From Mobula birostris (lineage: Eukaryota), in contig NC_092383.1 in NCBI RefSeq assembly GCF_030028105.1, positions 97,053,604 through 97,117,603 on the forward strand: a stretch of DNA of 64,000 nucleotides, written 5' to 3'. Under the pieces are notes generated by a model, which ran no database searches, had not been told where the DNA came from, and worked only from the letters and a program-made list of their open reading frames with translations. Position numbers and translations under genes: made by a program. Position 1 is the first letter of the stretch; each line of letters opens with the position of its first letter. This document shows positions 10,570-51,923 of this stretch, in pieces.

Positions 10570-10890
10570 CTGGGACTGGGGCTTCCCCGACCACCGTGAA
10601 CAGAGCTCGGGGACACTCGGTCTCCTTACCTTCTGGGATCTCAGTCGGACCGGACGTTGCTGGTGTTGAGTGGAATCGGGTATCACCCAGAAACATGATA
10701 GTGAAGTACTCGGAGGGGAAAGTTAGCTACTTCGGTCCTGAGGAGTACAAGCGAAGGATAACCTTTCATCCTGGGGACTTCAGTCTGGAAATCCATGATC
10801 TATGGAGAGAGGACTCCGGTGATTACGAGGTGATGTTTGTAGCAGTTTCAGGAGCTGAAAGTATAACAACAGTGCGACTGGAGGTGTACG
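10570..10890 (+). CDS. Gene 1: N-terminal IgV exon of a CD2/SLAM-family receptor (no B/F-strand cysteines)
   Basis: Acceptor tctcctcag, donor G|gtgagt, 321 nt, phase 1-1, open: xGTGASPTTVNRARGHSVSLPSG...VEWNR...RITFHPGDFSLEIHDLWREDSGDYEV...VRLEVY. Confidence 0.9.
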
Positions 10891-11039
10891 GTGAGTGAGA
10901 CACTGCGGAGGGACCTGGGTTTCACCAGTTCCTGAAACACTCCTAATTAATGGGTGAGGGCAGATCCTATGTGTTCCCTTGTTTACTGAACCCCACTCCA
11001 CCATACCAGGGGCGACTCGAGTCGCAGCAGAACACTCAA

Positions 11040-11525
11040 TGGACACGATTAAATATTCCCGTTTCAGCCTGTTACAGCTAAAAAGCACAACTGCTTCCAA
11101 GGTCAGTAGTCAACAAAGATGTCTTAATGCGTTTAAACGAATTATCGCTGCTTAAAACCGACGGAAACAACAGAGTCTCTGGTCGGAAGTGCCCACGGAA
11201 AAAACCTCGCAGGAAGCGTAAGTGAAGATCAGGATTACAAGTGCGTTTAGGGAAACGGAGTTTTAAACTCCCCAGACCGACGGTCTTGCTGCCGAACATG
11301 CAGTCTCTGGTGAATAAATTCGATGATCTCAAGCCTAGGTGCTGGATCAGAGGGACATTGGGACGGGCAATATACGTCATCGATTTACTTGTTTATTTAT
11401 TGTGTTTTATTTTATTTATTATTATCATTTTCTCTCTCTACTATTATGTATTGCTTTGAACTGCTGCCACTAAGTTACAAAATTTCACATCACATGCTGG
11501 TGATAATAAACCTGATTCTGATTCT
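11040..11525 (+). mobile_element. Internally deleted Rex1/Babar-type LINE (5' ORF start joined to 3' tail)
   Basis: RLGKRSFKLPRPTVLLPNMQSLVNKFDDL (start of an EN-type ORF) followed shortly by a tail ending (GATTCT)n; absent from the inverted paralogue at 9815-10252. Confidence 0.6.
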
Positions 11526-11754
11526 AACTGTCCGTGTCCAGAGCTGGCTGGCGGTCCCAGTGTATTGTGGCTGAGTCAGTGTGAGTCTGGGGGATACATT
11601 CACCACATCCCCGGAGACTGGACCAGAGGCTGTGAAGGATTCACCAGCAAAGACCGCGTGGCTTGAGACTGGAGGAGCTGAGCACACAGGGAGTAGAGAA
11701 TGAGGGGGATAGGTCGATGGGGTAGGAGAGGGCTGGACTGGTTGGGCTCAGCGG

Positions 11755-12350
11755 TATAGACCATAAGATAAAGGATCAGAATTAGGCCATTCAGTCCATC
11801 GATTCTGCCCCACCATTCAATGACAGCTGATTTATTACTTCTCTTCGCCCCATTTTCCTGCCTTCTCTGTAACTTTCATGCCCTAATATCGAACCCATGA
11901 ACCTTCACTTCAAAGATACCAAATGGTGGCCTCCACAGCATTCTGTTACAATGAATTCCACACATTCACAACTCTCTGGCTACAGAAATCCCCTCTCACC
12001 TCTGTTCTAAATGAATGTGCCTCTATTCGAAGGCTGTGGCCTCTGGTCCCAGACTCTCTCACTGCAAAAAACATCTTCTCCACATCCACTCTAACAAGGC
12101 TTTTCAACAGTCGATAGCTTTCAATGAGATCCCCCCTGACTCATATTGCTAAATTCCAGTGAGTACAGCCCCAGAGACACTAAATGTGCCTCATATGTTA
12201 ATCCTCTCATTCCTAAAACAAATCCTGAGAACTTCCTCTGGACCCTCCCCAGTGCCAGCATATCCTTTCTTCGATAAGGGACACAGAACTGCTCACAATA
12301 CTCCAAGTGCGGTCTGACCAATGTCTAATGAAGCCTCAGGATTTCATCCT
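11755..12350 (-). mobile_element. CR1 3' fragments
   Basis: Reverse ORF 12121-12321: VRPHLEYCEQF...LGLYSLEF. Confidence 0.8.
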
Positions 12351-13554
12351 TATCAGTGTTCTGTATCTGTGGGTCACAGTTCAACAGATCCCACTGTATC
12401 CCCCGGTCAAAGGTCTGGTCTGTCATGTACATGGACTCCAGATATTCCATAGGTTTCTCAAAGCGCTGCTTGGTAATTGCTCAGACTGAGGTCTGAGCTC
12501 AGCAACGTGTTTATTCCTCAGCCTTCATGCTGGTCTGTGCTGAGTGAGACCCTGTGTATTCATTACACTGAATATAGTGTCCCAGTGAGTGACACAGTAC
12601 ACAGACACAACCACACACTTGGAAATCAAAGGCTGAGGGAGATGGAGGATTATGCTGGAGACATGAAGCCTGTGACCCAGGGTGTGCTATAGAGATCAGT
12701 ACCTTGACTCTTACAGTGCTGATCTGCAAACGAGGTGTGAGAGGTAACTGCACAGTGGCATGAAACTTGGTGGAGTTTTAGATCCTGAGTGTACGGGAAA
12801 ACATTGAACAGCTGGTAAATCAGGCAGAGCAATGCTAGGTGGAATTTAATCCTGATAAATGTGAAGTGTTGCAGACTGGAAGTGTGCACGATGCTCCCAG
12901 GATGATCTGATCCAGAGTGGAGTTTTCAACAAACTCGGAGGAAACTGAGAATATAACAGAATAAAACAGGACCTTATTGTCATTGCTCTGGACAATGAGA
13001 TTGTGGTACATCTTCTGTCCATGCAAAATTGATATTTCCATACAATGCATGCGGTTCAGCTTAAATTTTAAAAAGATAAATGAATTTAGTTTAAGTCCCA
13101 TATTTACATGCAACAAATGACTTTGATGGTCCATAACACTCAATGGCTATTCCGTCAGGACGCTGGAGCAGGGATCCAATCACAGACCCTGTACTCTGCA
13201 CACAGTGATATTAATTGAGGAGCAAATCCCAAGGTGCAATCAAAGTTGCTGTCAAAATTCAGGCAGAGACCAAAACATCCAGAGAAATCCAAAATCCAGA
13301 ATCGGGAAACAGGCAGAGTCTATATTCTGTCAACTTCTTGAACCTTCATGAGGCTCCAACTGACCTGGGTGAAGAAGCCTCTCCCAAGCTGCAGGGTCAG
13401 TGTAGAGAGATCACCGACATGTCCCTTGTGTTCCTGTCTTCACTCTCATTTTCCCATCTCCCTGTGATTGGTTCTACAGTATATTGCCATGTTGTCTGTG
13501 ATTCTGCAGTAATTGGTGGCATCGGTGCTAAAAACAGCATCATATTGATACTCA

Positions 13555-15956: not shown

Positions 15957-16244
15957 AGCCGGTGTCAGGAACACACATCACAGTTCAGAACATCACTGGG
16001 ACCTGTGAGCTCACCCTGACCTGCTCTGTGACCTCTGGTGACCACACCAGCTTCAGATGGTGGAGGGGAGGAGAAGCTGTGGTGAACGACAGAACCCATC
16101 ACCTCTGGGGACACGGAGAGACACTGAAGGTTCATCACACCGCAGAGAGCGAAGCTGTTGTGTACAGATGTGAGGCCAGGAATCCCGTCAGTGTGGACAC
16201 AGCTCAGATCCGGCTGGGGGATGTCTGTAAACTGGACAAGTCTG
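15957..16244 (+). CDS. Gene 1: IgC2 exon with four Cys (SLAM-type)
   Basis: Acceptor cctcag, donor G|gtgagt, 288 nt, phase 1-1; splice gives LEVY-EPVS; TCELTLTCSV...FRW...YRCEARNPVS...DVC. Confidence 0.92.
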
Positions 16245-17160: not shown

Positions 17161-17383
17161 GATAGTGTGTAATGAGACACTAGCATAATCCAGTATCTGA
17201 CTTGTAGCTCGGCAGGGTATGATTGGATTTAGAGAGTTTTACTTAGTACTTAATCCCTGCCCTGGACGTTTGTGATGGGACAGTGATGTCCATGGGTTTG
17301 TGATGTTAGTCAGTGTTGGGAGGGTGGGGCTGGAGAAGGCCTGGTACCGTCTCTATAATCCGCGATCCTCTCTCTTTCGCCAG

Positions 17384-17482
17384 CGGAGAGAAGCTGCCTC
17401 TGTGGATGTCGGCTGAGGGCCACAGTCATTGCCGTCCTGCTCCTGATTCTCTTCTCAGTCACAGTCGCCGTACACGTCATCA
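17384..17482 (+). CDS. Gene 1: stalk + transmembrane exon
   Basis: Acceptor ctctctttcgccag, donor A|gtgaga, 99 nt, phase 1-1: AERSCLCGCRLRA-TVIAVLLLILFSVTVAVHVI. Confidence 0.85.
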
Positions 17483-17611
17483 GTGAGAACTGTTTTTGTG
17501 TGTTTCCAGTGAAAATCTGCTGTTCTGAAGGGTAGTGTCAACAGTGAGGGGTGGATTCAGCCCGGTGTTTAAAATCCCTGTTTTGGTCTCTCAATCCCAC
17601 CCCCCTGTGAC

Positions 17612-19748
17612 TGTCGTAAAGGGGCGTTGGGGGCGGCCCCAAACGCAAGACACAGACGCTGAAGTACTAGGAACAGGACAACGTTTATCAAGAAAGCAAG
17701 GGGAGTCAGGAAGAAACGACACTGGACATGGACACAGACCCTGGACAAGACATATGGACAGGACAAGAACACAAAGCATTAACTTGGATAGAACGAGGTT
17801 CTTGGACTAGGCTTAGAGAAGACGAGGTTCTTGGACGTGGCTTAGACTAAGGACTCCTGGACTGGATGAGGGAACTCCAGCACTGGGCTAGTCAAGGTAC
17901 TCTAGGGCTGGACGAGGTACTCCGGGGCTGGGCGAGGTACTCTGGGGCTGGGCGAGGGAACTCCAGCACAGGATGAGGAATCTCCAGCACAGGACAAGGA
18001 ATCTCCAGCACAGGGCTGGGAGAGGTAATCCTGTGCTGGAGTTCCCTCGTCCTGTCCAGGAGTTCCCTTGTCCAGTCCATGTCTAAGAACATCATCTAGT
18101 CCAAGCCACGTCCAAGAACCTCATCTTTTCTAAGCCTAGTCCAAGAACCTTGTCCTGTCCAAGTCAAGGCTTTGTCCTGTCCAGTCCATGTGTCTCATCC
18201 AGGGTCTGTGTCCATCCGCAGCATCGTTTCTTTCTGACTCCCCTTGCTTTCTTGCTAAACCTTGTCCTGTTCCTAGTACTTCAGTGTCTGTGTCTTGCAT
18301 TTGGGTATGCCATGAATGCCCCTCTTATGACAGAACAGCCCAGCCATACATGGACCCAGCAACGCAGACAGTGTCATTTAACTCTCTCCATTCTGGGTTC
18401 CCTCTTGTTGAATATCCTCCCCACCCGCCCGGGTCGTCCATAGTCCAGGAAAGCCTGTTAGGCTCCCATAAGGAAGGGTGGGTACTGTCATGGTCCGGTC
18501 TGTGAAGTCTGCATTCTGGTTCACGGTCCAGTCCATCGATTCCTTATTCCGGGTTTTCCTGTTTCCCCTTGTTCCACTGAGTGCCTTAATTGAGGCACCT
18601 GATTCTCGTTTTGGGCTGGCATATAAATACCTCTCAAACCAAGGATTCCTGGCTGGACTGTTCCCTTCCCCTTCTTTCTGAAGCCTCGCCTGCATCCCTG
18701 TCAAGTTCAACTGCCGGAGTGAGACCGGAGCCTTGCCATGCCAAGATAAGGAACTATCTATCGCTGAGTTTGGAACTATCTCTTTGTGTCCCCGTGTTTA
18801 GTGTTCGTGTCAAAGAAGAGTCCCGGCCCTAGGTCCTGTTCCCAAGGAGGGGTCCTGACTCTGTGTAAAGCCCCAGCCCTAAGTCCTATTACTGAGGAGG
18901 GGTCCTGGCTCTGTGTTCTGTGTTCCTGTGTTCCAAGTTCTAGGCACCATGTTCCAGTCCTGTCCAAGTCAAGGCTTCGTGTTCTCGTCCTGTCCATGTC
19001 CCTCGTCCAGTCAAGAAGTCCCTCGGCAAGTGTCCTCGGCAGTCATCCCAGCCTTGCGTCCTAGAAAGGGTTCTGGCCCTGTGCTCCAATGAGGAGCCCA
19101 GGCTCCGTACCCAAGAGCCTAACCAAGCTGAGTCCAAGAGCCGAGCCAAACCTAGTCCAAGAGCCACGTCCTGCCCTGGAGTATCTTGTCCAGTCCACGT
19201 CCAAGGCTCTGAGCGTCCAGTTCAAGTCCAAGGCTCTGTGTTCCTGTGTTCCAGTGTTCCAAGACCAAGTCCAGGCACCATGTTCCAGCCCTGTCCAGAT
19301 CTGAGCTTCATGTCCTCATCTAGTTCCGGTTCCTCACCCAACCCAGGAGTTCCTCTCCCAGCCCGGTGTTGGAGATTCCTCATCCTGTGCTGGGGTACCT
19401 CATCCTGTCCTGGAGCCACGTCCTGACCTTGCCAAGATCCTAGTCCCGAGTCCTAGCCTAGACCCGGGTTCCGATTCTGAGTCAAGACCCAGGTTCCGAG
19501 TCTCAACCAAGACCCAGGTTCCGGGTCCTTGTCCAGGCTCCTCATTACTAGTTCCCCATTTGGATCTCGTGTTTCTATTCCAAGTCCTAGCCCAGGCCGT
19601 GAATCCTAGTCTCGCCCAGGGCCTGTGTCAATGTCCAGCATCGTTTCTTCCTTACTCACCTTGCTATCTCAATAAACATAGTCCAGTTCCTAGTACTTCA
19701 GTGTCTGTGTCTTGCATTTGGGTCCGCTCCCAAAGCCCCCTTATAACA
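17612..19748 (+). mobile_element. Miniature Gypsy-type LTR element (LTR - 153 bp internal - LTR) with an inverted LTR piece at its left end
   Basis: Complete LTR 18486-19748 (TGTCA...AATAAA...ACA) preceded by purine tract AAGGAAGGGTGGGTAC; 18030-18332 is a direct copy of the LTR 3' end and 17612-17885 an inverted copy; internal part begins ATGGACCCAGC (MDPA). Confidence 0.7.
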
Positions 19749-20211
19749 CTGACTCTGAATCCCATCCACCTCCACTGTCCCAGATCTCTCAATCTCTCCC
19801 ACCTCAGTTCTCTGAATCCCTCTTGTCCCAGACTCTGCACTCTTCATCCTTCACTCCTCATTTAATCCCACCGAGTCTAACAGAGACCAGGGGTTTGGGA
19901 TAAGGTCAGAGGGATGGTGGAATGTGGAGATTGGGAACATGCAGATATGCAGTTCTAAAGAGGAAGATATGAAAATAGGGAAGGGGGAGATGTAAAATCC
20001 GGGACAATATGAGATACAAACCACAAGGGGGGATATGGAGACTTGAGACTTTTCATTGAGACTGGGAGAGGGAGAGAGTTTTCTTCCAGATCAGACAAGA
20101 GAGACCACATGACATTGCCCTCAGTGAAGGGGTCCTAGTGTGATGAGAAAGGAATTGAAACCTCAGACCCCTCACAGGGTGAACTGACCTCTCTCCTCTG
20201 TCCCCCCACAG

Positions 20212-20261
20212 GCTCCCATCCAGGCACCGGAGCAGAAGGCAGACTCCACAAGGCTGAATGA
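20212..20261 (+). CDS. Gene 1: probable terminal cytoplasmic exon (16 aa, no Tyr)
   Basis: Strong acceptor ctctcctctgtccccccacag; phase 1 gives SSHPGTGAEGRLHKAE-stop. Confidence 0.6.
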
Positions 20262-20269
20262 CTCCCCGT

Positions 20270-20960
20270 CACCTCTTCCCTTCTCCCCATCCCCATCATC
20301 CTCTTCCTCTCCACTCCTCCCTCCTCATTCCTCTCTTTCCCTTCCCTCCCTCTCCCTACCTGCCTCTCCTGTCTCCTGTTCTGACCCCCCACCACTACAC
20401 ACAGATGGGTGGGTCGGTTGAATGGAAGGCAGAGGGGATGAGGTACGGAATACGGAGGGAGGAAGGCAGAGGGACAGTTGGGGGTGGGCAGTGGAGGAAG
20501 GGATTTCAAAGGTCAGAGGGAAGGAGAGGAGGCAGGAGAGTGGAGAGGAGGGAAAGGTATGGAGTGTGGATGGGGAGAGGTGTGAGGATACTCGGAGTGA
20601 TCGAAGGGGCAAGAGAAGGAGAGCATGAAATCTGGGGGGGAGGGGGAGGGAGGGAAGAATATACTGGGAGGGGTAGCAGGGAGGGTGGGCAGAGTGAGGG
20701 AAGGCAGGAGGCAGAGAAAGGAGTGGGTTCGTCGGGGAAGCACAGGGGATCTGAGGTGGTGAGATACACGGACCTGGAGCAGAGCAGGTGAGACACAGTG
20801 AGAGGACGACAGGGGAGCTGGTGCAGGTGAGAGACAGATTGGGGCAGTTGGGAAGATGGGTGGATTTGGAGATTGGAGGAAAGAGAGGAAGGGAAAATAA
20901 AGGAGTGGGATTTGAGGGTGGTGAGATAAAGGGACTGTAGAGTGAAACCAGTAGGGGAGA
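20270..20960. repeat. Pyrimidine-rich then purine-rich low-complexity tract
   Basis: CT-rich 20270-20390 followed by a GA-rich run; explains the spurious Pro/Gly-rich ORFs. Confidence 0.8.
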
Positions 20961-21199
20961 ATGATGCAGGATTAGGACCGGAGGAAGCCTGTGCCTGCCC
21001 ATTTATTTTGGGAAACTATGGAACCATTCCTTGAAACAAAAGGACTGCAAGACCTTTCCCAAAGGATGGCACAATATCCCTGCAGCTGCCAAGCAACACT
21101 GATCGTTCTGTGGGGAGACGGGAATCTGCAGATGATGGAATCTGAAGCAACAGACAATCTGCTGAAGAAACTCAAAGGTTGGCCAGAATTTGTGGAAGG

Positions 21200-23070
21200 A
21201 AATGAACTGTCAACATTTCGCGATGAGACCCTTCACCAGACTGATAGAGAGAGAGTGGTCAATATAAAGAGAGAGTGGGTGGAGGAGATGACATGTGGAT
21301 CCAGATTATTGGATGATAGAACAAGGAGAGGAGAAGTGAAATAGTGAGGACGGCTGGGAGGTGACAGGTGGAGTGAGCAGATGAGGAGAGAGTGGGTGGG
21401 GACCTGGTGGGAGAAGTGGGGCGGATGGAGACATGGAGAAAGAAAAAGAGGGAAATAAATGGATTGATAGGTGGCAGTGAGTGTATGCTGGGTATAGGAG
21501 GAACTGGGAAGATTAGGTGGGAGAAAGAAAAGGAACAGAGTAGGGGCAGTTTATCTGAGATTGGCATGTACATGATTGAATTCTCCATCGGGTTGTAAAC
21601 TACCCAGGCAGAATACAAAGTGCTGCTTCTCTAGTTGTGTTTGGCCTCATCCTGGCAGATGAAGAGGAGAAGGACATCCATGTCATTATGAGAACGGAGA
21701 CAGGAATTAAAATTGCTCAAATCTGTGAGCTCCAGATAGCACTGGTGGGTGGACTGCAAGTGCTGAGACTCGCCAATGCAGAGCAGCGCACAACAAGAGC
21801 ACTGAATGCTTCAGACAAGGTCAGAGGAGGGGCTTGTGAATGTCTGCCTCATCTGGAAGGTGATGAGGGAGGGAGGAGGTGTAGGGACAAGTATTACACC
21901 TCCTACAGTCACACAGCATCGTGTCTGGGGAGGGGGAGAGATGAGTGAGGTGGGGAATCATGGAGAGAGTGATGATATGGAAATCAGCAAGGGGTCAGGG
22001 AATTGGGGAGGTGGGGTAGTGTAGGGATCACGTTGCAGTTGACAGGACTGGTAGGTGATGTGCTGCATACCTGGGCTGGTTGGATGTAAGAACTCCCTCC
22101 CTGTTCTGTCTTGGCTGAGAGAAGGTGAGTTGAGATGTACAAGGGAGGAGATGTGGGTGCCCTCTGACAGAGTGTTGGTGGGTGGTGGGGGGGCAGTTCT
22201 TCAAGAAGGAGCATCACAGACATCCTGTAGTGGAAAGCCTCATCTCAAGTACAGTAGAAATCCACAAACTGCGAGAGCAATGGAGTCCGAACAAGGGACA
22301 TGCTGGAAGGAGGTGTGGTCTAGGTAGCTGTGGAAGTCAGTAAGTTTGAAGTAAATGTCTCCAGAGACAGAGGCAGTGATCAAGAAAGGGGAGAAAGGTG
22401 TCAGAAATAGAACAGGGGAATTTGAAGGGTTGGGATGGAAGTTAGTTGGGACATTAATGAAATTGCATTCCAGATCCATGCAGGAATTGTCACCTGTGCG
22501 GTTATCAATGAGGAAGAGTTGGGGAGAGATGTCTGGGTAGGTTTGGAAGAAAGTTCGTTTCATATAGCCAGAGAAAAGGCAGCCATAGCTGGGGCCAATT
22601 CCAGTGCCGTGGCTGCACATTTAATCTCCAGGCAACGACGTTGTTGACCGTGAGCACTCGTGCCTGGTGGAGGAGGGTGTTAGTCGAGGAGAACTGTCTG
22701 GATCTGTGTTTTGGAAAGAAATGGAAAGGCCTTACGCCTCCCTGATGGGGGATGTCAGTCCGGGGTGAAGGTGAGGCAGCGGAGGGCAGGGAATCTGAAG
22801 TTGTTGGAATGGTGGGGACTGTGAGGTATGCTGGATGTAGGTGGGTAGGTGGGTCTGTGGTGGTCTTCCCAGTTTCTCTGTAAATACCACACCTCTCTAA
22901 ATCTGAATAAAGCAAACTATCAGAGGCATGAGCTGTGAGATGGTTCCGGTAAAGTGGGAAACGACTTTCAAGCAACACACATCAAAGTTGCTGGTGAACG
23001 CAGCAGGCCAGGCAGCATCTCTAGGAAGAGGTACAGTCGACGTTTCAGGCCGAGACCCTTCGTCAGGACT
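21200..23070 (-). mobile_element. Penelope-like retroelement (RT + GIY-YIG), degenerate
   Basis: Reverse ORF 22240-22620 GTGIGPSYGCLF...IYFKLTDFHSYLDHTS (Penelope RT); terminal repeat CAACACACATCAAAGTTGCTGGTGAACGCAGC at about 22972. Confidence 0.8.
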
Positions 23071-24860: not shown

Positions 24861-24884
24861 TAATTTTTGTGTGAGAGAGAGGTT

Positions 24885-39185: not shown

Positions 39186-40479
39186 TGTATGTGTTTTCTC
39201 TCTCACTCCAGTGACAAATGGACTCCAGCACCATTTTCTGTTTCACAGCCTCAACCACTTCCTGCCACCATGTTACAACTTTGCAAGGCTTTCACCAAGG
39301 TCACACACTTCTTGTGTCGCTGAAACCCTTCATTCGTATTCTCTGCCTTGTCGATTAAACTGTTGTGTTTCGATTTCAGTGGCTCTGTTTCATCTGACTG
39401 ACCTGTGCCAGCCTCTCACTGGATCTGGCACAAGGCCACAAACAGTATTAATTTATTGCTCTTGCCCCATGTCACTTCCTTTGTTCAACCCAGTTCATCC
39501 AAATACGCAGCTCAGTCTTCCTCAGGTCACACAGGCTGTTTCTTTGATAAGCCTGTCAGTCCGACAAAATCAAAAACAGCTTTTTATTTGGAAATTATCC
39601 CTTATTTATCAGATTGTCAACCCCACTGCATCTACTGTTTGCTGCTCTGATCAAACTGTCCCCGGGAGGGGAGCCAGCTCACAAAATGGTGGCCGCAGAG
39701 AACACACATAAAATGGCTGCCTCCATTCCTTCCACTACAAGAATATATTTGTTTTTACTGTTTCCCCTGTCCCTGGCTCATTTGGTGTTCTACAGTTTTT
39801 TAATCCCTTCATGACTGACAATCCACAGGGTCAGCATTCAATCCCTTGGGTTGTTGTAGGAAAGCTTCAGACTTCGGAGAAATGAGATTGTTTGGTCAGG
39901 TGGGCAGAGGAAGAGGCAAATGGAGAATAAAATGGAGTTTGTGTTGGATCAGGGTAAATTGACGTTCCTCTATTCGGAGGCTGTGTCCTCTGGTCCTACA
40001 CTCCTTCACCATAAGAAGCATTTTCTTACGTCCTCTGCCGAGGTATTTCAACATTCGATAGGTTTCAATGAAATTTCCACTCATTCTTCCAAATTTCAGT
40101 GAGTACAGGCCCAGAGCCATCAAATGCTCCTCATATGCTCTACAACATGAAATCCTTGGAAGTGAGTCCATAGGTTGTGGAATCAATTCAGGGTTATGGT
40201 GTGTGAAGTTATCCACACTGGTTCAGGAGTCTGATGTGTAACTGTTCCTGAACCTGGTGGTGTGGAACCTGAGGTCCGTACCTCCTTTCTGACAGCAGCA
40301 ATGAAAGGAGATTATGGACTGGATGGTCGGGGTCCTTGATAATGCACGTTGCTTTCTTGTCGCAGTGCTCCTTGTAGATCTGCTCAGTGGTGGGGAGGGT
40401 TTTTCTTGTGATGGACTGGGCCATATCCACCACTTTATGTTGGCTTTTCTATTCTTTTGGTCAGGACTGCGGTGATGTG

Positions 40480-43400
40480 GGCGAGCAGCCGGAAGTCTGG
40501 TACATGTTGGTACCAATGACATAGACAGAAAAAGAGAGGAGGTCCTAAAGAAAGATTACTGGGAGCTAGGAAGAAAATTGAAAAGCCGGACCTCCAGAGT
40601 AATAATATCAGGATTGCTGCCTGAGCTGCGCACTAATGATGGTAAGAATAGCAGAATTAAGCAGATGAATGTGTGGCTAGGTAACTGGTGCAGGGGGCAA
40701 GGCTTCAAATTCTTGAATCATTGGGATCTCGGCCTGAAACGTCGACTGCACCTCTTCCTAGAGATGCTGCCTGGCCTGCTGCGTTCACCAGCAACTTTGA
40801 TGAGTGGTACTAATATCCTGGTGGGATTGTTTAATATAGCTGTTAGGGAGGGTTTAAACTAAGTTAGCAAGGGGAAGGAAACCAAGGTGTTAGGGTGGAG
40901 GAAGAGGGAAATAGAAATAAGTCAAAAATACTGTGCAGCAAAGATCGCAAGAAGGACAGGCCGGTGAATATACAGGATAATTTGCTGCAAAATAGAAATA
41001 TAGCAAAATCGACAACAGATACTGATCTAAGTGTACTGTACTTAAATGCACGCAGCATTAGAAATAAAGTGGATGACCTTGCTGCACAGCTGCAGGTTAA
41101 AAGGTATGACATTGTGGCCATCACCGAGTCATGACTAAATGATGGATGTAATTGGGAGCTGAATATCCCAGGATACACAGTGTACAGGAAGGATAGGAAG
41201 GTAGGTAAAGGCGGTGGCGTGGCCCTGTTGGTAAGTAATGATATCAAATCAATAGAAAGAGGGACATAGGATCAGAAGAGGTAGAATCCTTATCGGTAGA
41301 ATTAAGAAATGGCAAGGGTAAAAAGACACTAATAGCAGTTATATACAGGCCTCCAAACAGCAGTCGGGATGTGGACTACAAGTTGCAGCTGGAAATAGAA
41401 AAAGCGTGTCAGAAGGAAAATGTCAAGATAATTATGGGGGATTTTAATATGAAAGTGGATTGGGAAAGTCGGGAAGGTAATGGATCTCAGGAGAGGGAGT
41501 TTGTAGAATGCCTACAGGATGGCTTTTTGGAGCAGCTTGTCCAGAAGCCCACCAGGGGACCGGCTGTTTTGGATTAGGTGCTGTGTAGTGAATCTGAGGC
41601 GATTAGGGAGCTGGAGGTAAAGGAACTCCTCGGAAGTAGTGATCATAATATGATTGAGTTCAGTTTCAAATTTGAAAAGGAGAAGCTGGTATCAGGTGTA
41701 TCGATATTTCAGTGGAACAGGGGAAATTACAGTGGTATGAGAGAGGAACTGGCCCAAGTCAATTGGAAAAGTAAACTAAATGGAGGGACGGCAGAGCAGA
41801 ATTGGATGAAATTCCTACAAGAAATAAGGAAAATGCAGGAAAAATATATTCCAAGAAAAAAAATTCATGAATGGAAAAATGGCGCAAATGTGGCTAACGA
41901 GAGAGGTTAAGGCAAAAATAAAAGCAAAAGAAACGGCGTACAAGGAAGCAAAAATTAGTGGGAAAATGAGGACTGGAAGACTTTTAAAAGCTTACAGAAG
42001 GAAACTAAGAAAGTCATTAGGAAAGAAAAGATGAATTATGAAAGGAAGTTGGCGATCAACATTAAAAAAAGGATACTAAGTGTTTTTTTAAATATATGAA
42101 GAGTAAAAGAGTGACAAGGGTAGATATGGGACCGATTGAAAATGATGCTGGAGAAATTATAATGGATAACAAAGAGATGGCGGAGGAACTGAATGAGTAT
42201 TTTGCATCAGTCTTCACAGTGAAAGACATGAGCAATATACCTGATAGCCAGAGGTATCAGGGAATAGAATTAGGTACAGTCAAGATAACTAGAGAGAAAG
42301 TGCTTGGGAAGCTAAGTGGACTAAGAATAGATAAGTCTCCCGGCCCGGATGAGGTGCACCCAAGGGTTCTGAAGGAGGTGGCTTTGGAGATTGTGGAAGC
42401 ATTGGAAATGATCTTCCAGGAATCAATAGACTCTGACATTGTTCCAGAGGACTGGAAGGTCGCAAATGTAGTTCCGTTATTTAAGAAAGGAACGAGGCAG
42501 CAAAAAGAAAATTACAGACCTATTAGTCTGACATCGGTAGTTGGAAAGATATTGGAGTCAATCCTCAAGGACGAGGTTATGAAATACCTCGGTGCATGAC
42601 AAGATAGGCCGAAGCCAGCATGGTTTCATGAAGGGAAGATCCTGCCTTACCAACTTATTGGAATTTTTTGAGGTAATCTCGAATAAGATTGACAAGGGAG
42701 AGGCTGTGGATGTTGTGTATTTGGATTTTCAAAAGGCCTTCGATAAGGTGCCGCATATGAGGCTGCTTAATAAGATGAGAGCCCATGGAATTATAGGAAA
42801 GAATTGAAATGGATGGAGCATTGGCTGATAGGCAGAAAGCAAAGGGTGGAAATAAAGGGGTCCTATTCTGATTGGTTGCCGGTTACTAGTGGTGTTCCGC
42901 AGGGGTCGGTGTTGGGGCCGCTTCTTTTTATGATGTATATCGATGATTTGGATTATGGATTAAATGGTTTTGTGGCCAACTTTGCGGATGACACCAAGAT
43001 AGGTGGAGGAGCAGGAAATGTTGAAGAAACGGAAAGGTTGCAGAGAGACTTAGTCAGTTTAGGAGAGTGGGCAAAGAAATGGCAGATGAGATACAAAGTT
43101 GACAAATGTACGGTTGTACATTTCGGAAGAAGAAATAATCTGGCAGATTATTATTTAGATGGGGAGAAAATTCAAAAATCGGAAGTGCAAAGGGACTTGG
43201 GGGTCCTCGTGCAGGATACCCTAAAGGTTAACCACCAAGTTGGATCGGCGGTAAGGAAAGCGAATGCTATGTTGGCGTTCATTTCAAGAGGAATAGTGTG
43301 TAAGAGTAAAGAGGTGTTGATGAGGCTCTATGGGGCATCAGTGAGACCTCATTTGGAATACTGTGTGCAGTTTTGGGCCACCTATCTTAGAAAGGATACA

Positions 43401-43913
43401 TTGATGTTGTAGAGAGATCAGAGAAGATTTACGAGGATGATTCCTGGAATGCAGGGGCTAACATATGAGGAGTGTCTGTCGGCTCTTGGATTGTATTCAT
43501 TAGAGTATAGAAGAATGAGAGGGGATCTCATAGAAACATTTTGAATGTTGAAAGGATTGGACAGAGTACATGTGGAAAGGTTGTTTCCCTTGGTGGGTGA
43601 GTCCAGGACAAGAGGCCATAGTCTTAGAATTAGAGGGTACCCAGTTAAAACAGAGATGAGGAGAAATTTTTTTAGCCAGAGGGTCGTGGATTTGTGGAAT
43701 TCATTGCCACATATGGCTGTGGAGGCCCGATCATTGAGGGTGTTTAAGGAGGAGATTGACAGGTATCTAATTAGTCAGGGTATCAAGGGATATGGGGAAA
43801 AGCTGGAAATTGGAACTAGATGGGTGAATAGTTTAGTTCATGGGGGAGCTGTGGAGCAGACTCGATGGGCTGAATGGCCTACTTCTGCTCCTTTGTCTTG
43901 TGTGATCTTCTGT
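40480..43913 (+). mobile_element. CR1 LINE (end of ORF1 + full ORF2, frameshifted), specific to copy A
   Basis: EN (LYLNARSIRNK) and RT (YLDFQKAFDKVPH, FADDTK); GTGATGTG at 40472-40479 and 43914-43921; empty site GTGATGAG at 53516-53523. Confidence 0.95.
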
Positions 43914-44196
43914 GTGATGTGATAAAAGATCAGTCAGAGTCTCATTGATTGTGGAGCAGGCACGAGGGGTCAAAAATCCTCCTGATTTTATTGTTCTTAT
44001 TTGGTGTGAGGTGAAATACTGACATCAGTCAGTCCGCTCGTGACGTCGAGCGCTGTGGCTTTCTGCTTGTGATCACACCTCTGTACTTCACCTTTTGCAC
44101 AACACCTACTTTCTTGTCGACTGCTCTTCACAACGTACCGAATAGGAGAGGAAGCTTTGTGCAGCCCACCAACGTCTATACTGTTCTGTGAGAACA

Positions 44197-44251
44197 ATGA
44201 ACACCAGGCATCTGCTTATCTCCTGCTGGCTAACTCTCTGTGCCTCACTCT
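44197..44251 (+). CDS. Signal-peptide exon, copy A (non-canonical T|gcaagt donor)
   Basis: MNTRHLLISCWLTLCASL + 1 nt (phase 1). Confidence 0.6.
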
Positions 44252-47200
44252 GCAAGTTTGATTCAGAGCAAGTCTTTGTCTTTAACATTCTTCTCTCCAG
44301 GTTCGCTGTTACTTTCTGGACTCGGGCATTTCTGGGTCCCACACTACCAGGGCAAGGAGAGTGTAGGTCGGACACAGTGAAGCTGCCTCTCCTGTCACAC
44401 TCTCATAAAACACCAGTTTGACATGGAGAGCAAGAAAAGTTTGGTTAATGGTGGGTTTTGGGACAGAGGATTGGCTCTTTCTGTAGCCATAGAACCATCC
44501 TGCTTCTAATTCTGGAAACGGAGCTTGAGAAACAGGTATCAGTTGTTCACAGGATTGGGAAGGATTGGCAGGGATGTGGAATTAAGTACATGTGACCCAG
44601 GACCCCTCAGAACCCAGGGACTGGGATCTGGTCTGGAGATGTTTCATGGGAAAAGATCCTGATGGGGAATCGCTGTAGGAATGGTGGATGGTGGGGGCAG
44701 GAAGTGGCGGGTGTGGGGGGCACTGGAATGGAGAAAGAGAGTGGAAATTGTTAACAGTCATCTTCATTTTTGGTCCCAAGTGCTGGGTTTCTCTCTCTCT
44801 CGGCAGACAGACTGCCGATCTGTCAATAGCCACATCACAATATTGGACATACAAGCATTGAGAGAGAATGATAAATAAAATCCTGATATCATTGCCCAAA
44901 ATGGTTGTTAACCTGTAGAATTAGTCGTAAGTCTGAGGATTGAGACTGATTATGAACACAGCAAAGGGTAACAGATATATCGTTGAAGAAAGCGAAAATG
45001 GAAAGTTGAAGGATATTAAAAACAGACTGTGAGAGCCGGAATCAGGACATGAAACAAACACAGCAGCAGGTACAACTGTAGTTCCCTTACAGACAGACGT
45101 GGGTCTTTGTAATGGGGAATGAAGGAACAGTAGAGGAAATAACCATGGCTTTTTGTGTGTCTTTGTGGAACACACAAAAACCTGCCAGAAATACAGGATA
45201 GACAAGTGTTGAATGCTAGTGTAGAAATAAAATCAATCAGCGTCAATGATGAAATAACATCACGAAAATGGATAATTGACACAGGCCTGATGATCTCCAT
45301 CCCGGAGTCTGTGACAAGGTGTCAGTAGAGTTACTCAACTTTATGGTTATCATCTGGCAAACTCTACAGTTTCAGGAATGGTTCCTACAGACTGTTTCAA
45401 AAAGGAGGGAGAGAGAGAAAACTGGGAACCACACAACTCTCCAGCTGACACTGGGAGCGGGGAGAATGTTGGAATCTGTGATAATGGGTGAGAAATGAAT
45501 GCTGAAGGGGAATTATCACAAAGATTCACCAGACTGGTTTGTGATGTGGTGGGTCTGACATGTCACTAGTGTGGGTAATAGACTAGGTCTCTATTCAAAA
45601 AGTTCAAAATAAGTTTTATTATCAGAGTAGAGATATGTCACCACATACAATCCTGAGATTCTTTCTCTGCGGGCATACTTAGCAAATCTATAGAACAGTA
45701 ACTGTAAATAGGATCAATAGACAACAAACTGCGCAAATAAATATAAATAAATATCAATAAATAACCTGTTCTTGAACCTGATGGTGTAGGTCCTGAGGCT
45801 CTTGTACCTTCTACCTGATGACAGCAGTGAGAAAAGAGCATGGCCTGGGTGGTGAGGATCTTTGATTATGGCAATGTTTCATGTAGATGCTTTCAGTGGG
45901 TGGGAAGGTTTTATCCATGATATACTGGACCGAATTCACTACATTTTGTAGGATTTTCCGTTCAAATACATGGTGTTCCCATACCAGGCCATTACGAAGC
46001 CAGCCGGCATACTGTGGTAAATCACTGGGATTCTCCGGTGATCCGGAAATTCTTCTTTCATTGATAGATTTCTAGATATTAAGGAGATCAAGGAAAATGG
46101 CAAGAAAATGTTTCAGTCAGGATCAGTTGAATATGTTGTCTGGTTCAATGGTCGCACGTCTGCTCCCTGCTCCTGCTCGTCATGTTGACACGAGCTCAGC
46201 AAAGTGTTTGTGAACCCGGATCACACAATGGAACAAAAGAGCAGAGAGTGTGACTGGTTGCATGAGAGTGTGTGTGAGTGTGAGTGTGAGTGTGAGTGTG
46301 TGTGCGTGAGAGTGTGTGTGTTAGTTTCAATCACCATTATCTGTCGTATCTAGAGTTTGATGTGTGTGAAAATCCCAGGAGATCAGCATTGAGTTGCTGC
46401 CACATGATGGCTGATTTGGTATTTGTTAACGGGCAGGTGTCGGGTTGTATTCAATAAAGTGACTATTGAGTGTGATCCAGGCACAGCCCTGCAGTGCATT
46501 CAGTGTCCAGCATCTCAGTGTGGAGAAGCCATCCACAGTGAGACAGAGAGAGATACTGCAGGGAACTCATACCTTCAACCCACCAGGTCAATGCTAACCA
46601 TCAACCACCTGTTTACACTCATACTACATTAACGTGTCTGGTCCAGACGGCGTACCTGGCCGAGTACTAAAGATCTGTGTGGTCCAACTAACAGGAGTAT
46701 TTTGCACTTTCTTCACTGTACAGCCGCACTTGGCTGGGAAATGGGTGAGAACCAGAGAAGCTGCCCCAAACACACTCTGATCCATTTTTTAAAATCTCCC
46801 CGTCTCTATCATATGATACAGGAGGTGGAAGCAGTCAGCAGTTCAGGACACATTTGTAGAATGAGAAAAGAGACAACATTTCAGGTCAAAGACTGTTCAT
46901 TAGAACTGTGGAGAAGTAAAAACTATAGGGAAAGTGGGTGTTGGGGTGTCTCTGACAGGGTGCCATGGGGATAAGCTGGCTACAGGATTATCTGGTCAAT
47001 GGGTGATTGGGAGCAGTTGGAACAGGGAGAACATGGACAAAAGGAGATTGACGACAATGTATAGACGTGAACTATTCAACAGGAAGCCTGGTCCGGTAGG
47101 TCAGGCTAGACACCATCTCCACTACCACATCCAGCTAGATTCTCTTACACTCTTCTTAAGCCAATCACCCCTGGTGGGGCACAGGCTGCTGACAGCAGCT

Positions 47201-48113
47201 CACTAGACACCTCTATCCATCTAAACAGGGAATTCTGACCCTCTCGCACAACAGAAACTGTAGCATTGGACTGTACACCCTCTTTGCTCCAAGGTCTGAT
47301 GAGGAGTGGCAGAGTCCTCACAGACAGACTCTAACTGGGACTCCACCCTCACCACCTGACACTGGAGGTCCAGGCAACAGGTGAGGGTCAGACAGTGCAG
47401 AGTGCACAGGGGCAGCCGGTGCAAGGAACCACCTGGGGACGGGAGGTGCAGCCTGTGGGACATTTCCCAGAGACGGCTCAAGTTGTGCTGAACCAGCTCT
47501 GCAGGAGAGCTTGGGGGACGTAGATCCAGTGACAATTCCGGCTGAGTGGTGGTCACCGTGAGTCCGTTCAGTCGACCTCCTGACCCCTGCACACTCACAG
47601 TGAGGGTATCCCAGTAATCTCACCCCAAACTTCCTAGAAAGTATCCATGAGGTATGTAACATTACACTGAATATAGTGTCCCAGTGAGTGACACAGTACA
47701 TGTACACAACAGCACACTCACACACAGCAATATGGTTGCTGACTCACTCCAACAGTAATATCACATTCACAATAATCTCACTCAGCAGTGTCTGTCTGAG
47801 AAACACTCTCTCCCTGTGTGCCGCGTCCACACAGAGGAAGAACTAAAGACATGGAAATGGAGAGAATTCCTGGAATAAAGAGCTAGAAACAGGAAATGGA
47901 GGAGAGTTTGTCGATGAGTGTGGGTAGTGCACGTGGGAACTTTCTCCAGCAGCAAGTGACTGGTGAGGGAAGGGTTAAACCGTTGGGTAAAATTGAGGTG
48001 GGGTTGGCTTGAAGTTCACTCTGGAGTGTTGGGGATGGGATGGGGGAGTTGGGGATTGAGGTGTCCACAAGGATCTTCATTATTCATCTTTCATCTCTCC
48101 CTCACACCCTCAG

Positions 48114-48394
48114 AGCCCGTGTCAGGAGCAAACATCACAGTTCAGAACATCACTGGGACTTGTAACCTCACCCTGACTGCTCCGTGACCTCTGGCAACCC
48201 CACCAGATTCAGTTGGAAGAGAGAAGTTACAGGAGACAACAGCAGCCATCACATCTGGAAAGACGGAAAGATGATACAGGTTCATTGCACAGCAGAGATC
48301 GAGGATGTTGTGTACAGGTGTGAGGCCAGCAACCCCATCAGTGAGGACACCGCACAGGTCCGGCTGGGGGACGTCTGTAATCTGGACACATGTC
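48114..48394 (+). pseudogene. Third IgC2 paralogue with a 1-nt deletion
   Basis: Intact splice sites (ccctcag, C|gtgagt); CTGACTGC versus CTGACCTGC in gene 1 shifts frame just before the second Cys; otherwise open and collinear. Confidence 0.88.
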
Positions 48395-50879
48395 GTGAGT
48401 GTCAGAGGAAGAAGTTGGGATTTAGTTATCTCCCCGTCCCAGAAGTGTGAGATGGGACAGCACAGAGGAGCTTCAGTTTGTATCTATTCTGCACTCTGAC
48501 ACTGTTTGAGAGAATACTGTAGAGAACCATTTACTTTATCGGCAACCTTCATTTTTTGTATTTTATACTCAGGCCTCTGCTCATATTTGTCAGCACAGAC
48601 TGGGTGAGGAACTGCAGTACATTTTGCAGAAGGTCCACACTGAATCAACTGTGCACTGTTACTGGAGGGAGGGAGTGATTCGATTGGAGGGAAGGATTAT
48701 TTAGGATAGCTGAGGCACTGAGTGGTCAGGGAGGTGGAGGCTGAGTTTGAGGAGAGGGGTTACTGAGGGCCAGTGTGAGGGAGCTGGATTAAAATCAGAG
48801 GAAATACAATCCATGACACATGTGCTGGGGAAGAGGGTTTACTGAGAGTTTTCTTTTTGACAGAATTGGACTAATATTTCTGGAGATCTGGTCTATGATA
48901 CAGGACCCTTGCTGTGAGTGATTTCAGAGGGAGAATGTGAGAGTTAGATTAACCAGTGAGTCCATAGACACGAAGCCTGGAGCAGGTGAATCAGGACATT
49001 AACTCAGCCTCAGTTCATCACACAATGGGGAAAATCGTTGCGACGTTTGCAGACACGAAGCCCGGAGCAGCCGGATCAGGACACTGACTCAGCCTCAGTT
49101 CTGCGGGGAACGGGGCAAATCTCACAGAGCAGTAATGGACAGTGTCAGGGAGTCGGATCAACATCATCAGAGATACAGACAGGGACAAAGACACGAGGGG
49201 AGAGGGGCTGCAGAGGGATAGTGTGAGGGAACAGGATTAACATCAGTGGAGAAACAGTCAGTGGCACTGGAGACTGAGGAAGAGGGGTTTCTGAGGAACT
49301 AGGTAAGGGAGATTGAATGACATCACTGGACATACATTTAGTGACTCCGGGAGTTTGTGGAGAGGAGGGATGAAGGGAAAACGTGAGGAACTCAGTCAGT
49401 ATCAGTGGGTACATTCAGTGATACACGGTGATGGGGAAGAGGGGTTCCTGGTGACAGTGTCAGGAAGCAGTGTCACCGCGGTTCCGATATGGCCCAAGTG
49501 CGGAGTGAGAGACACTGAAGCAGGTCGATAGTTCAGACTTTCATCCAAACAAGGGGAAATAAAAGAATAAGTGCTAGGCCAAAGAGAGTCGTTAACTAAA
49601 ACTCTCGAAAGGGAAACGAAGCCTACACAGTGGCTGAAAAGAATATCTAAACATTAAACGAATACCGTTAGTCTTCAGAGTCAGTTGGAACAGGTGGACA
49701 AAGTTACTTCGAACTCAACGGCTGTGAAGGCGGATGAAGGCTGCAACAAATCCATCAGCTCCAATCGTCGTGGTTTCCATGCCATTGGAATCAGTTGGTT
49801 GATTTGCGAAGTATCGTGTGCTTCTTGGAGTGCAACATCAAGTACACGTTAAACAAATACACGCACAGGAGTCTTCACTCTGTACGGAACGAAGACCATC
49901 ATCCTCGACCTCGAGGGATAGCCACGACGAGAATCAGTTGATTTTGAAAGTCCAATGGCTCAGGGAAGGCCGAATGCAAAACTGCAGCGAAGCTTTGCTA
50001 TGCTCTGTCCAAGTCTCGACAAGCACGACGACGACAAGAATGTAGTTAAATACTATCACGATTAAATAATAATTACCTGACACGTGCAAATTCACAAGCG
50101 CGATTGCCGTATCTACTGTACTGCCGAATCTGTGGTTGTGACAAGCAGGGGTAATATCAGACACAAAACAATCACAAGACCATAAGACCATAAGATATAG
50201 GAGCAGAAGTAGGCCATTCGACCCTTCGATCCCGCTCCACCATTCAATCATGGGCTGATCCAATTCTTCTAGTCATCCCCACTCCCCTGCTTTCACCGCA
50301 CACCTTTGATGCCCTGGCTAATCAAGAACCTCCCTATCTCTCCCTTAAATACACCCTTGGCCTTCACAGCCGCTCGTGGCAACACATTCCACAGATTTAC
50401 CACCCTCTGACTAAAGTAATTTCTCCACAACTCAGTTCTAAAATGACGTCCTTCAATCCTGAAGTCAGTGAGAAAGAACTGGATGGACATGAGCGGAGTT
50501 GCAGTCACTGGCACAGGCACTGAGAAAGAGGGGCTATCGAGGGAATAGATGAGGGAAATGATTAACAGCAGTGGACAGAGTCTGTGTTACAGGGAACTGA
50601 AGATGTGTAAGGCGTTACTGAGGGACTGGATGAGGGAGAGGATAACAGCTTTAGAGAACAGATTTAATTAATGCCATCTTTTCTTTCCTCGCTGTTTAAG
50701 GCCACAGGGTCTCTGTATTTCTGGGAGATTTTTTGTACCTTTGTTTGAGAAGGTGGGCAACTTCAGTTTTGGTTCCTCTACCATTTCCTTAATTCCTGTC
50801 ACAAACATTTCCAAATATGTCTGTCAACTGTATTCTTCTTCTGTGTACCAGTGGGGGCACCACAGTGTAGAAGGGTGGT

Positions 50880-51400
50880 GGAGAGCAGTGATGTGATAGT
50901 GACTAGGGGATGAGGGGACTGAGGGGTATTGGAGGGGAGAGGAGAGGTGCAGGACAGTGATGTGATGGTGATTAGAGGGAATGGGGAGCAAGAAGATTGA
51001 GGGGTATTAGAGGGGTCAGTGCAGGACAGTGATGTGATGGAGATTGGAGGGAATATAGATGGAAGGACTGAGGGGTATTGGAGTGGAGGAGAAGGGAGGG
51101 GAGTGATTTGATAGCGATTGGAGGGAATGGGGACCGAGGGGACTGATGGGTATTATAGGGGAGCAGAACAAGACAGTGATGTTATGGAGATTGGAGGGAC
51201 TGAGGGGAATTGGAAGGGAGGAGAAGAGAGGGGAGTGATTTGATAGTGATCGGAGGGAATGGGGATGGAGAGAAGTATTGGAGGGGAGCGATGCAGGACC
51301 AAGATATGATGGAGATTGGAGGGAATAGGGGTGGAGGGACTGAGGGATGTTGGAAGGGAGAGGAGCGGAGTGGAGAGGTGGAGTTTGGATGGTAGTTACG
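50880..51400. repeat. Degenerate purine-rich minisatellite
   Basis: Recurrent CAGGACAGTGATGTGATGGAGATTGGAGGGAAT...GGACTGAGGGGTATTGGAG units. Confidence 0.75.
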
Positions 51401-51550
51401 TGATGGTGATTGTAGGGTACTGAGGGACCGTGCTGAGGTGACAGGGTGTTTTCTTCAACTGAGGAGGGATGGAGTGAATTCATCAGTCCTGTGTTACTGG
51501 GAACCTGAGGACTGGATTCATCAGGAAATCTTTTCTCCTCTCTGTTACAG

Positions 51551-51700
51551 CCCCTAAAGCAACAGCAGCGGGAGATGCAGTGACCTGGGTGATCAGATTG
51601 TTCGTGGTGAGGACCCTCCTGATCTTTGCCCTCACTGTGATCCTCACGGACACACGGAAGAGAGGACCTGAGGGAAGGGAAGTAACTTCAGGGACTGAAG
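51551..51700 (+). CDS. TM exon with intramembrane Arg; GC-AG intron follows
   Basis: Acceptor tttctcctctctgttacag; 150 nt, phase 1-1: xPKATAAGDAVTWVIRLFVVRTLLIFALTVILTDTRKRGPEGREVTSGTE; donor AAG|gcaagt. Confidence 0.75.
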
Positions 51701-51864
51701 GCAAGTGGATCTGACACCCTGTCATTGAGGCTGGTATTTGGGAGAGGGAGAGAGAGAGCGGGTGGGCAGGGAGGTGACAACTGGGATGGGAGAGAGGGGT
51801 TAGATGGGGTAAAGTGGAAATAGTTTCAGTACAGACGCTGTCACCTCTGCTTTCTGTCCTACAG

Positions 51865-51923
51865 ACCCACTGGAGACAGGTATCATTTACACAGATCTTC
51901 AGAAGAATCGCAGCGTCAAATAG
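51865..51923 (+). CDS. Terminal cytoplasmic exon with ITIM (IIYTDL)
   Basis: Acceptor tttctgtcctacag; phase 1: DPLETGIIYTDLQKNRSVK-stop; fits I/V/L/S-x-Y-x-x-L/V. Confidence 0.75.

Follow-up and report, generated by a model that had tools for sequence, protein, structure and literature searches.

A short-tailed SLAM-family gene and its probably defective neighbours in a tandem cluster of the ray Mobula birostris

The SLAM subgroup of the CD2/SLAM receptors is marked by immunoreceptor tyrosine-based switch motifs (ITSMs), and mammalian SLAMF8 and SLAMF9 are members without such motifs. Bifunctional immunoglobulin (Ig) receptors, which combine a charged transmembrane segment (TM) with an immunoreceptor tyrosine-based inhibitory motif (ITIM), are represented by KIR2DL4 and chicken CHIR-AB. 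For Xenopus, a passage in PMC4536121 that cites Guselnikov et al. 2011 (Immunogenetics 63:679) describes an expanded CD2/SLAM family that includes NxxR-containing TMs. Here we analyse a stretch of 64,000 nucleotides (nt) from the mobulid ray Mobula birostris (contig NC_092383.1, positions 97,053,604 to 97,117,603 of the forward strand), in the following called the window and numbered from its first letter. The window belongs to a large cluster of CD2/SLAM-family genes arranged in tandem, and it very probably contains one intact gene (gene 1) and two defective copies (units 2 and 3). A first-pass annotation had instead read it as three receptors of a paired activating/inhibitory family.

Our literature search yielded no publication that treats the SLAM genes of cartilaginous fish; such genes are present in the automatic annotation of NCBI. 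When 1.84 billion representative proteins were searched with the gene 1 C2 exon, a family of ray and shark proteins was recovered, which we refer to by their numbers (P0165 and so on). In a second search, relatives carried the public names SLAM family member 5-, 8- or 9-like, CD48-like, Ly-9-like and 2B4-like, and the species among them were Pristis, Hypanus, Hemitrygon, Mobula, Amblyraja, Rhinoraja, Narcine and several sharks. A family profile was built from 32 relatives and searched against the PDB, and public RNA contigs were aligned to the gene 1 stretches of the window. Over the window, the family hidden Markov model (HMM) recognised one V exon, one intact C2 exon, one C2 exon split over two frames, one C2 fragment and two TM exons.

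Gene 1, its transcripts and its family

As a member of the SLAM family, gene 1 is complete and expressed and has been annotated before; it encodes a V domain, a C2 domain, a TM and a short tail. Its exons within the window are the following:

10570 to 10890, plus strand: V-set exon, phase 1-1, no Cys, acceptor ...ctcctcag, donor GTGAGT
15957 to 16244, plus strand: C2 exon of 288 nt, phase 1-1, AG/GT splice sites, four Cys codons, intact
17384 to 17482, plus strand: stalk and TM exon of 99 nt, phase 1-1, CAG acceptor, GTGAGA donor, CLCGC stalk, neutral TM
20212 to 21864, plus strand: last exon with 15 tail codons, stop codon TGA at 20259-20261, then 3' untranslated region (UTR) to at least 21864

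Pfam assigns the first of these exons to the V-set (E value 6.4e-9) and the second to Ig_3 (E value 7e-9) as well as to I-set. The joint between both (10889/90 to 15956/7) was seen with its GT..AG ends in one RNA contig, and the C2 exon is covered by RNA contigs. The TM exon was located by means of the homolog P0041 (E value 5.9e-5), and the summed RNA depth in the bin 17350-17549 equals what is expected for a 99-nt exon at the depths of those contigs. In case of the last exon, which is preceded by a polypyrimidine tract and an AG, the position is given by RNA contigs: a contig of 641 nt comprises the C2 exon, then about 100 nt, and then 20212-20452 without a single mismatch, further exact contigs lie over 20727-21380 and 21464-21864, and depth is zero at 19950-20149. 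On the plus strand after 17482, a search for a tail exon with an ITSM or with the QPPEGN motif of the family gave nothing relevant.

The spliced product of the V, C2, TM and last exons has 251 residues and matches residues 20-270 of P0165 with 100% identity; the NCBI name of P0165 is "SLAM family member 5-like [Mobula birostris]". The leader (residues 1-19) was not found within the 64,000 nt, and its exon lies upstream of the window. The product is a type I membrane protein, and its membrane part consists of the Cys-rich CLCGC stalk, the residues RLR, a neutral TM of 21 residues and the tail SSHPGTGAEGRLHKAE, which is 16 residues long and contains no Tyr. The neutral TM with a 16-residue, Tyr-free tail had been proposed in the first-pass annotation, and the RNA contigs together with the match to P0165 now confirm that exon 17384-17482 is spliced to 20212.

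Could the additional C2 copies further downstream serve as alternative or additional exons of gene 1 and give rise to isoforms with several C2 domains? The relatives P0001 and P0002 do have two or three C2 domains in tandem. However, the RNA contigs run from the C2 exon (16244) to the TM exon and on to 20212, the 3' UTR of gene 1 reaches at least to 21864 and thus lies upstream of both copies, and both copies carry stops or frameshifts. No transcript that joins 16244 or 17482 to 28773 or 48114 was found in the stretches of gene 1 that are covered by RNA contigs. We therefore give such multi-C2 isoforms hardly any chance.

The assignment of gene 1 to the CD2/SLAM family, in this case to its tail-less kind, is supported by several sequence features. 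Its V-set domain is without the canonical intradomain disulfide, as is the hallmark of the family, and its membrane-proximal C2 domain has the four Cys residues for two disulfides. Among the three C2 segments of the window, this second hallmark is found in gene 1 only, as it is lost in copy 2 and lies out of frame in copy 3. Across the 32 relatives there is no variation at C148, C197 and C216, whereas C142 is nearly invariant, with conservation in at least 90%. The layout of one domain per exon with phase 1 junctions, in the order leader (outside the window), V, C2, TM and cytoplasmic part, also matches CD2/SLAM genes. The top PDB match of the family profile is SLAMF6 (2if7, E value 1.4e-16), which is matched over profile positions 25-216 and thus over the whole ectodomain, followed by a CD48/CD2 chimera (3e-15), CD48 (1e-14) and CD2 (8e-14), with SLAMF5, CD58 and 2B4 also found. 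CEA reaches an E value equal to that of SLAMF6 (1.5e-16) but over a shorter span. The SLAM-like ectodomain that had been recognised before thus holds, by the V domain without Cys, the C2 domain with four Cys and the whole-ectodomain match to SLAMF6, and so does the proposed grouping of the Ig domains, as the profile comparison matches CD2/SLAM structures over the whole ectodomain and CEA over less. The tails of many relatives contain two ITSMs (TxYxxV/I), whereas the tail of gene 1 contains none, and no ITSM-bearing exon was found on the plus strand of the window.

Orthologs with the same stalk, TM and tail exist in Mobula hypostoma, Hemitrygon akajei, Pristis pectinata, Amblyraja radiata and Rhinoraja longicauda, and sharks have the same TM type. 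In batoids the conserved tail reads SS(H/R)PGTGAEGRLHKAE. For the distant batoids (Pristis, Rhinoraja and Amblyraja), identity to P0165 is 60-64% in the ectodomain and 70-87% in the stalk, TM and tail, and from this difference we conclude that the membrane module is under constraint. This better conservation suggests that the short tail is functional and not vestigial.

How might such a receptor act? By analogy to SLAM and CD2 members, the disulfide-less V domain would make homophilic or heterophilic trans contacts between leukocytes. As there are no tyrosine motifs, the product should be unable to recruit SAP or EAT-2, and it could instead be a ligand or decoy for ITSM-bearing neighbours, or it could signal via a partner, for which the conserved CLCGC stalk and the TM would be the likely contact. 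Without tyrosine motifs and SAP-type recruitment, we infer for gene 1 a mode of action as in the short-tailed class of SLAMF8 and SLAMF9, or as in a ligand of the CD48 type. For a mechanism that depends on a ligand or partner, as compared to a purely adhesive or decoy role, we see about an even chance.

Some further observations concern gene 1 and its introns. Annotated isoforms of the paralog P0178 (Mobula) and of its Hypanus ortholog P0181 skip the 99-nt TM exon while the reading frame is kept, and these isoforms would be secreted with the same C-terminal peptide. An inverted repeat of 139 nt with 90% complementarity surrounds the V exon (10086-10224 and 10859-10997); its right arm takes in the final 32 nt of the exon together with the donor and the first part of the intron, and its left arm is the upstream reverse complement. 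Pairing of the two arms in the pre-mRNA would mask the 5' splice site, and the repeat looks like a small inverted duplication in origin. In intron 3, a stretch of 723 bp (17611-18333) is 75% identical to its own reverse complement, with short tandem arrays nearby, and contigs of 90-95% identity stack there, as would be expected of a dispersed repeat.

Two probably defective copies and the question of paired receptors

Downstream of gene 1, self-comparison of the window reveals that C2-like segments and their upstream introns occur twice more: 15360-15980 matches 28210-28796 (68%), 15779-16272 matches 47934-48422 (74%), and 28583-28796 matches 47933-48137 (72%). The associated family exons are these:

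28773 to 29027, plus strand: decayed C2 pseudo-exon fragment (copy 2), from a three-way alignment
44197 to 44251, plus strand: unit 3 leader exon of the MNTRHLL type, with 94-100% identity to those of P0025, P0194 and P0201
48114 to 48394, plus strand: C2 exon of unit 3 (copy 3), 281 nt, four Cys codons, GTGAGT donor
51551 to 51700, plus strand: unit 3 TM exon, followed by a GC donor, with two Arg and one Asp located in the membrane segment or at its end, family tail HMM E value 4e-17
51865 to 51923, plus strand: first cytoplasmic exon of unit 3 with IIYTDL, ending in TAG at 51921-51923, HMM E value 0.007

Unit 2 consists of the C2 fragment and a piece of a cytoplasmic exon. The fragment has suffered a 69-bp insertion, a change of Cys1 to Phe, two 1-bp deletions and an in-frame TGA, and its homology ends near 29027, so that Cys3, Cys4 and the donor are gone and one of the four Cys codons is left. 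In the family HMM scan it gives a match of 19 residues only. Neither tblastn with the family tails nor the tail HMM revealed a TM exon for this unit.

Unit 3 retains more of the gene structure, and yet it is defective at several points. Its leader exon has the donor GCAAGT at 44252 in place of the GTAAGT found in the copy at 53799, and between 44251 and 48114 no V exon was detected by tblastn, direct translation or HMM. In the C2 exon a base is missing at about 48177 (ACC TGC has become AC TGC), the frame consequently meets a TGA at 48185-48187, and a further 6 bp are deleted; the tblastn match accordingly breaks into two frames at 48178, and with a length of 281 nt phase 1-1 cannot hold. Past the frameshift, this exon is 93% identical to the paralog P0192. 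The expectation of three homologous C2 exons with four Cys each was therefore correct as far as three segments with homologous upstream introns lie at these places, but only the exon at 15957 is an intact four-Cys exon.

The TM exon of unit 3 is 74% identical to that of P0194, in which the TM is neutral. Its first Arg is present also in P0193 (M. hypostoma) and P0195 (M. birostris) and its second Arg also in P0195, while the Asp at the cytoplasmic end of the TM is private to the copy in the window. At the two Arg positions P0194, P0199, P0201 and P0025 are uncharged, and P0192 has Glu for the second Arg. The donor at 51701 is of the GC type, and the models of paralogs from three species end with GTEG(K/E)WI or ...SKWM, which is the read-through of this donor; judged from these protein models, the GC donor appears to be shared with paralogs in other species.

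The cytoplasmic exon with the ITIM-like sequence aligns with DQAETGIIYTDLQ..KNRSV of the intact paralogs P0190, P0191 and P0201, which read ...GTE/DQAETGIIYTDLQ(W/R)MQKNRSV(W/E)QPPKGNDRF...TEYAAV and thus have IIYTDL followed by the ITSM TEYAAV. Because of this alignment with ITSM-bearing paralogs, the "ITIM" of unit 3 is the first tyrosine motif of the family in a form that is typical of the subfamily. Compared to the intact paralogs, the exon of unit 3 is three codons shorter, has a TAG where the paralogs continue, and is degenerate downstream; an exon with the second tyrosine motif (ITSM) was not found in the window. Of the combination of Arg-TM and ITIM that had been noticed at this place, the TM exon, the GC donor and the IIYTDL exon are real by homology, but they are ordinary family exons with substitutions in a unit that is defective. 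Unit 3 is best read as a pseudogene that derives from an Arg-type member.

It can be asked whether unit 3 might still work, or might have done so until recently, as a bifunctional receptor with an Arg-TM and an ITIM-like motif, with the frameshift being a mistake of the assembly, or a null allele that this individual happens to carry while the receptor is encoded elsewhere in the population. The splice sites and phases of the C2, TM and cytoplasmic exons are kept, the GC donor is shared with paralogs of other species, the Arg residues are common to P0193 and P0195, and the C2 domain has the mentioned high identity to P0192. However, the V exon is absent from the interval between leader and C2, and the lesions are independent of each other (the GC donor of the leader, the frameshift, the Asp at the TM end, the TAG in the tail and the lack of a second-ITSM exon in the window), and none of the retrieved annotated proteins is an exact match. 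A functional unit 3 is therefore unlikely, although we would not rate it as low as the other alternatives considered here.

A third membrane module, a TM with Lys and a short tail, had been linked to the C2 segment at 28773, with the reservation that the assembly gap lies between them. The two features that matter here are the following:

38748 to 38905, plus strand: "Lys-TM" open reading frame, unsupported as an exon, its last 38 nt being a fragment of the family cytoplasmic exon
38870 to 47637 (copy A) and 51915 to 60490 (copy A'), plus strand: segmental duplication, self-BLAST blocks of 93-97% identity, period of about 13 kb

The only Lys-containing hydrophobic open reading frame after the assembly gap is 38597-38902, with a putative acceptor at 38747, and the Lys lies at the edge of a weakly hydrophobic stretch. 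No homology match was found between this frame and the TMs, tails and leaders of the family. Its homology to unit 3 begins abruptly at about 38868/51913, inside the cytoplasmic exon, and this point is also the start of the 93-97% segmental duplication. As homology exists only from about 38868 onwards, the "tail" is a cytoplasmic exon fragment and the "TM" is unrelated upstream sequence. The Lys-TM module is thus not supported: the sequence comparison leaves an open reading frame that extends across a rearrangement breakpoint. A relic of an MWEF-type leader had been suggested by weak blastp matches to leaders (E values of 0.7 and worse), and we rejected it since the leader HMM gave no match to the frame.

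What remains of the idea that three working receptors were formed here by shuffling a SLAM-like ectodomain onto three unrelated membrane modules? The three homologous C2 segments with homologous introns are in line with it, the TM exons at 17384 and 51551 have no detectable similarity to each other, and there are charged residues in the TM of unit 3. Nevertheless, by HMM and tblastn the window provides one V exon and one intact C2 exon for the three receptors claimed, copy 2 is truncated and has a stop, copy 3 is frameshifted, the Lys-TM is without homology and spans a breakpoint, and the TM and IIYTDL exons of unit 3 align along their length with exons that are standard in paralogs with ITSMs. 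The window can be accounted for by point substitutions and decay, so that exon shuffling of unrelated modules is not needed, and we regard the three-receptor model as very improbable.

The same holds for a paired activating/inhibitory family within the window. Such a family, of the KIR, LILR, SIRP or CHIR type, has at least two intact genes with closely related ectodomains at one locus, and here we find a single V exon and a single intact C2 exon. On the activating side, a basic residue within the TM would go along with a short tail and with an ITAM adaptor (FcR gamma, DAP12), and the candidates for a charged TM are the unsupported Lys frame, the Arg of the defective unit 3, and the Arg of P0193, P0195, P0047 and P0206, which are apparently intact and located elsewhere. 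On the inhibitory side, a neutral TM would be combined with an ITIM in a long tail, whereas the sole ITIM-like motif of the window is found in the Arg-TM unit and is followed by a stop. One intact gene with defective copies, and the ITIM and Arg-TM within one and the same unit, do not make up a paired family.

Several points weigh against reading the window as one intact gene with two defective copies and a SLAM-like function. Between the window and the RNA contigs there are five clustered differences in the gene 1 C2 exon (16137-16187). They are common to contigs from three runs, and three are coding changes (H to R, P to T and V to I) that give the residues of the paralog P0178, while in the last exon the same contig is equal to the window; the pattern is suggestive of another allele with a gene-conversion tract or of a contig into which the paralog was mixed. 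The missing base in the unit 3 C2 exon and the missing V exon are known from the assembly alone, and unit 3 lies in the segmental duplication of 93-97% identity, where assemblies can err. Since the first Arg of its TM is shared with the apparently intact P0193 and P0195, this Arg is a lineage feature and not a product of decay. Finally, the function given to gene 1 is inferred from knowledge on other CD2/SLAM members.

Charged membrane segments outside the window and the surroundings of the copies

Within the window we are thus left with one ordinary annotated gene and pseudogene debris, and the remaining interest, a modest lead, lies in the paralogs outside. The paralogs with an MNTRHLL leader have ectodomains of 85-93% identity, and P0193 (one Arg) and P0194 (neutral), both from M. 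hypostoma, have 93% identical ectodomains. At fixed positions of the TM there is no charge in P0194, P0199 and P0201, one Arg in P0193, two Arg in P0195 and unit 3, and Glu in P0192. It is a tentative idea, possible but doubtful, that this mobulid SLAM subfamily is becoming a paired-receptor system by point mutation and not by exon shuffling, in which case unit 3 would be a dead member of a live system. The weak, conserved GC donor after the TM exon could then act as a switch between a tail-less isoform and an isoform with the ITIM-like motif and the ITSM.

A second lineage, which would also be in line with such a nascent paired system, comprises P0047, P0206, P0227 and P0236; here the Arg is found near the start of the TM (LLIRAV, IIRLIV), and the tails, 46-59 residues long, contain no tyrosine motifs. 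This lineage with Arg-TM and Tyr-free tail has been kept in Mobula and Hemitrygon. If the charged TMs of rays are real, they would extend the report from Xenopus to cartilaginous fish, with SLAM-type ectodomains being wired to membrane segments of the activating type. As for the locus itself, its lesson guards against over-reading tandem Ig exons in the repeat-rich genomes of cartilaginous fish.

In composition the window as a whole is vertebrate-like, with a GC content of 45% and a CpG observed/expected ratio of 0.33, and it has a single run of N. Two more features complete the surroundings of the copies:

31115 to 31753, no strand: assembly gap (the N run), between two same-orientation copies of a long interspersed nuclear element (LINE)
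53799 to 53853, plus strand: second leader copy, 89-94% identical to family leaders, donor GTAAGT (GT at 53854)

The flanks of the gap are homologous to each other (30709-30985 and 32123-32407, the latter 370-654 nt right of the gap) and correspond to one portion of the LINE, with both flanks oriented alike, which means that there are two copies of the element and not one continuous copy. The right edge of the gap begins in a reverse transcriptase (RVT_1, ALKBH8_N), and no SLAM-type exon was found at either edge. The blocks of the segmental duplication pair 38870-40477 with 51915-53521 and 43914-45812 with 53516-55416, with further blocks thereafter; a LINE at about 40478-43913 interrupts copy A, and an insert at about 55417-58239 interrupts copy A'. 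The leader at 53799-53853 probably belongs to the next gene downstream, and a V remnant after 53853 was not detected by tblastn, translation or HMM.

Two other regions resemble the N-termini of annotated models. An open frame at 61573-61791 (plus strand) is 88% identical to the first 73 residues of P0192 and also to the start of P0195, and has neither a signal peptide nor a Pfam match; possibly it stems from a repeat and has been taken up into gene models as a spurious first exon. On the plus strand at 46965-47382 and 59820-60237, in both copies of the segmental duplication, there is resemblance to the N-terminal 79 residues of P0190 from Hypanus, upstream of its V domain, with 59-100% identity in pieces and with stops and frame changes, so that this is either non-coding sequence under conservation or a 5' end that was modelled wrongly.

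Comparison with known receptor systems

On paper, unit 3 resembles KIR2DL4 and chicken CHIR-AB in that an Arg in the TM is paired with an I-x-Y-x-x-L motif. These receptors, however, belong to another Ig family, unit 3 is defective, and in the intact ray paralogs the motif is the first of a pair of ITIM-like motif and ITSM as is typical of SLAM tails. A closer likeness exists to the CD2/SLAM family of Xenopus, as far as it is outlined in the passage cited above: in both cases there is a lineage-specific expansion of SLAM-like genes of which some members have an Arg in the TM. The difference is that the ray TMs (VIRLF, LLIRAV) are without the NxxR motif given there for Xenopus. Moreover, the Arg forms of rays are point substitutions relative to neutral paralogs with the same exon type, and no adaptor association is known for them.

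For gene 1, the comparison leads to other molecules. With CD48 and CD58 it shares a CD2-type ectodomain of two domains and the lack of a signalling tail, and structures of both are matched by the family profile. Like these ligands, gene 1 is located next to signalling paralogs that could be the receptors. CD48, however, is anchored by glycosylphosphatidylinositol (GPI), whereas gene 1 has a TM and a hydrophilic tail of 16 residues that does not resemble a GPI signal.

The other molecules to be compared are SLAMF8 (BLAME) and SLAMF9 (CD84-H1). The CLCGC stalk and the tail SS(H/R)PGTGAEGRLHKAE are batoid features that were not matched to mammalian proteins with the tools used. The likeness is one of architecture and of automatic names, and these names disagree between species (5-like, 8-like, 9-like, CD48-like), with several orthologs of gene 1 being named "SLAM family member 8-like" or "9-like" by NCBI. 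In architecture, gene 1 corresponds to both mammalian proteins: an ectodomain of V and C2 is followed by one TM and by a short tail that contains neither an ITSM nor any other tyrosine motif.

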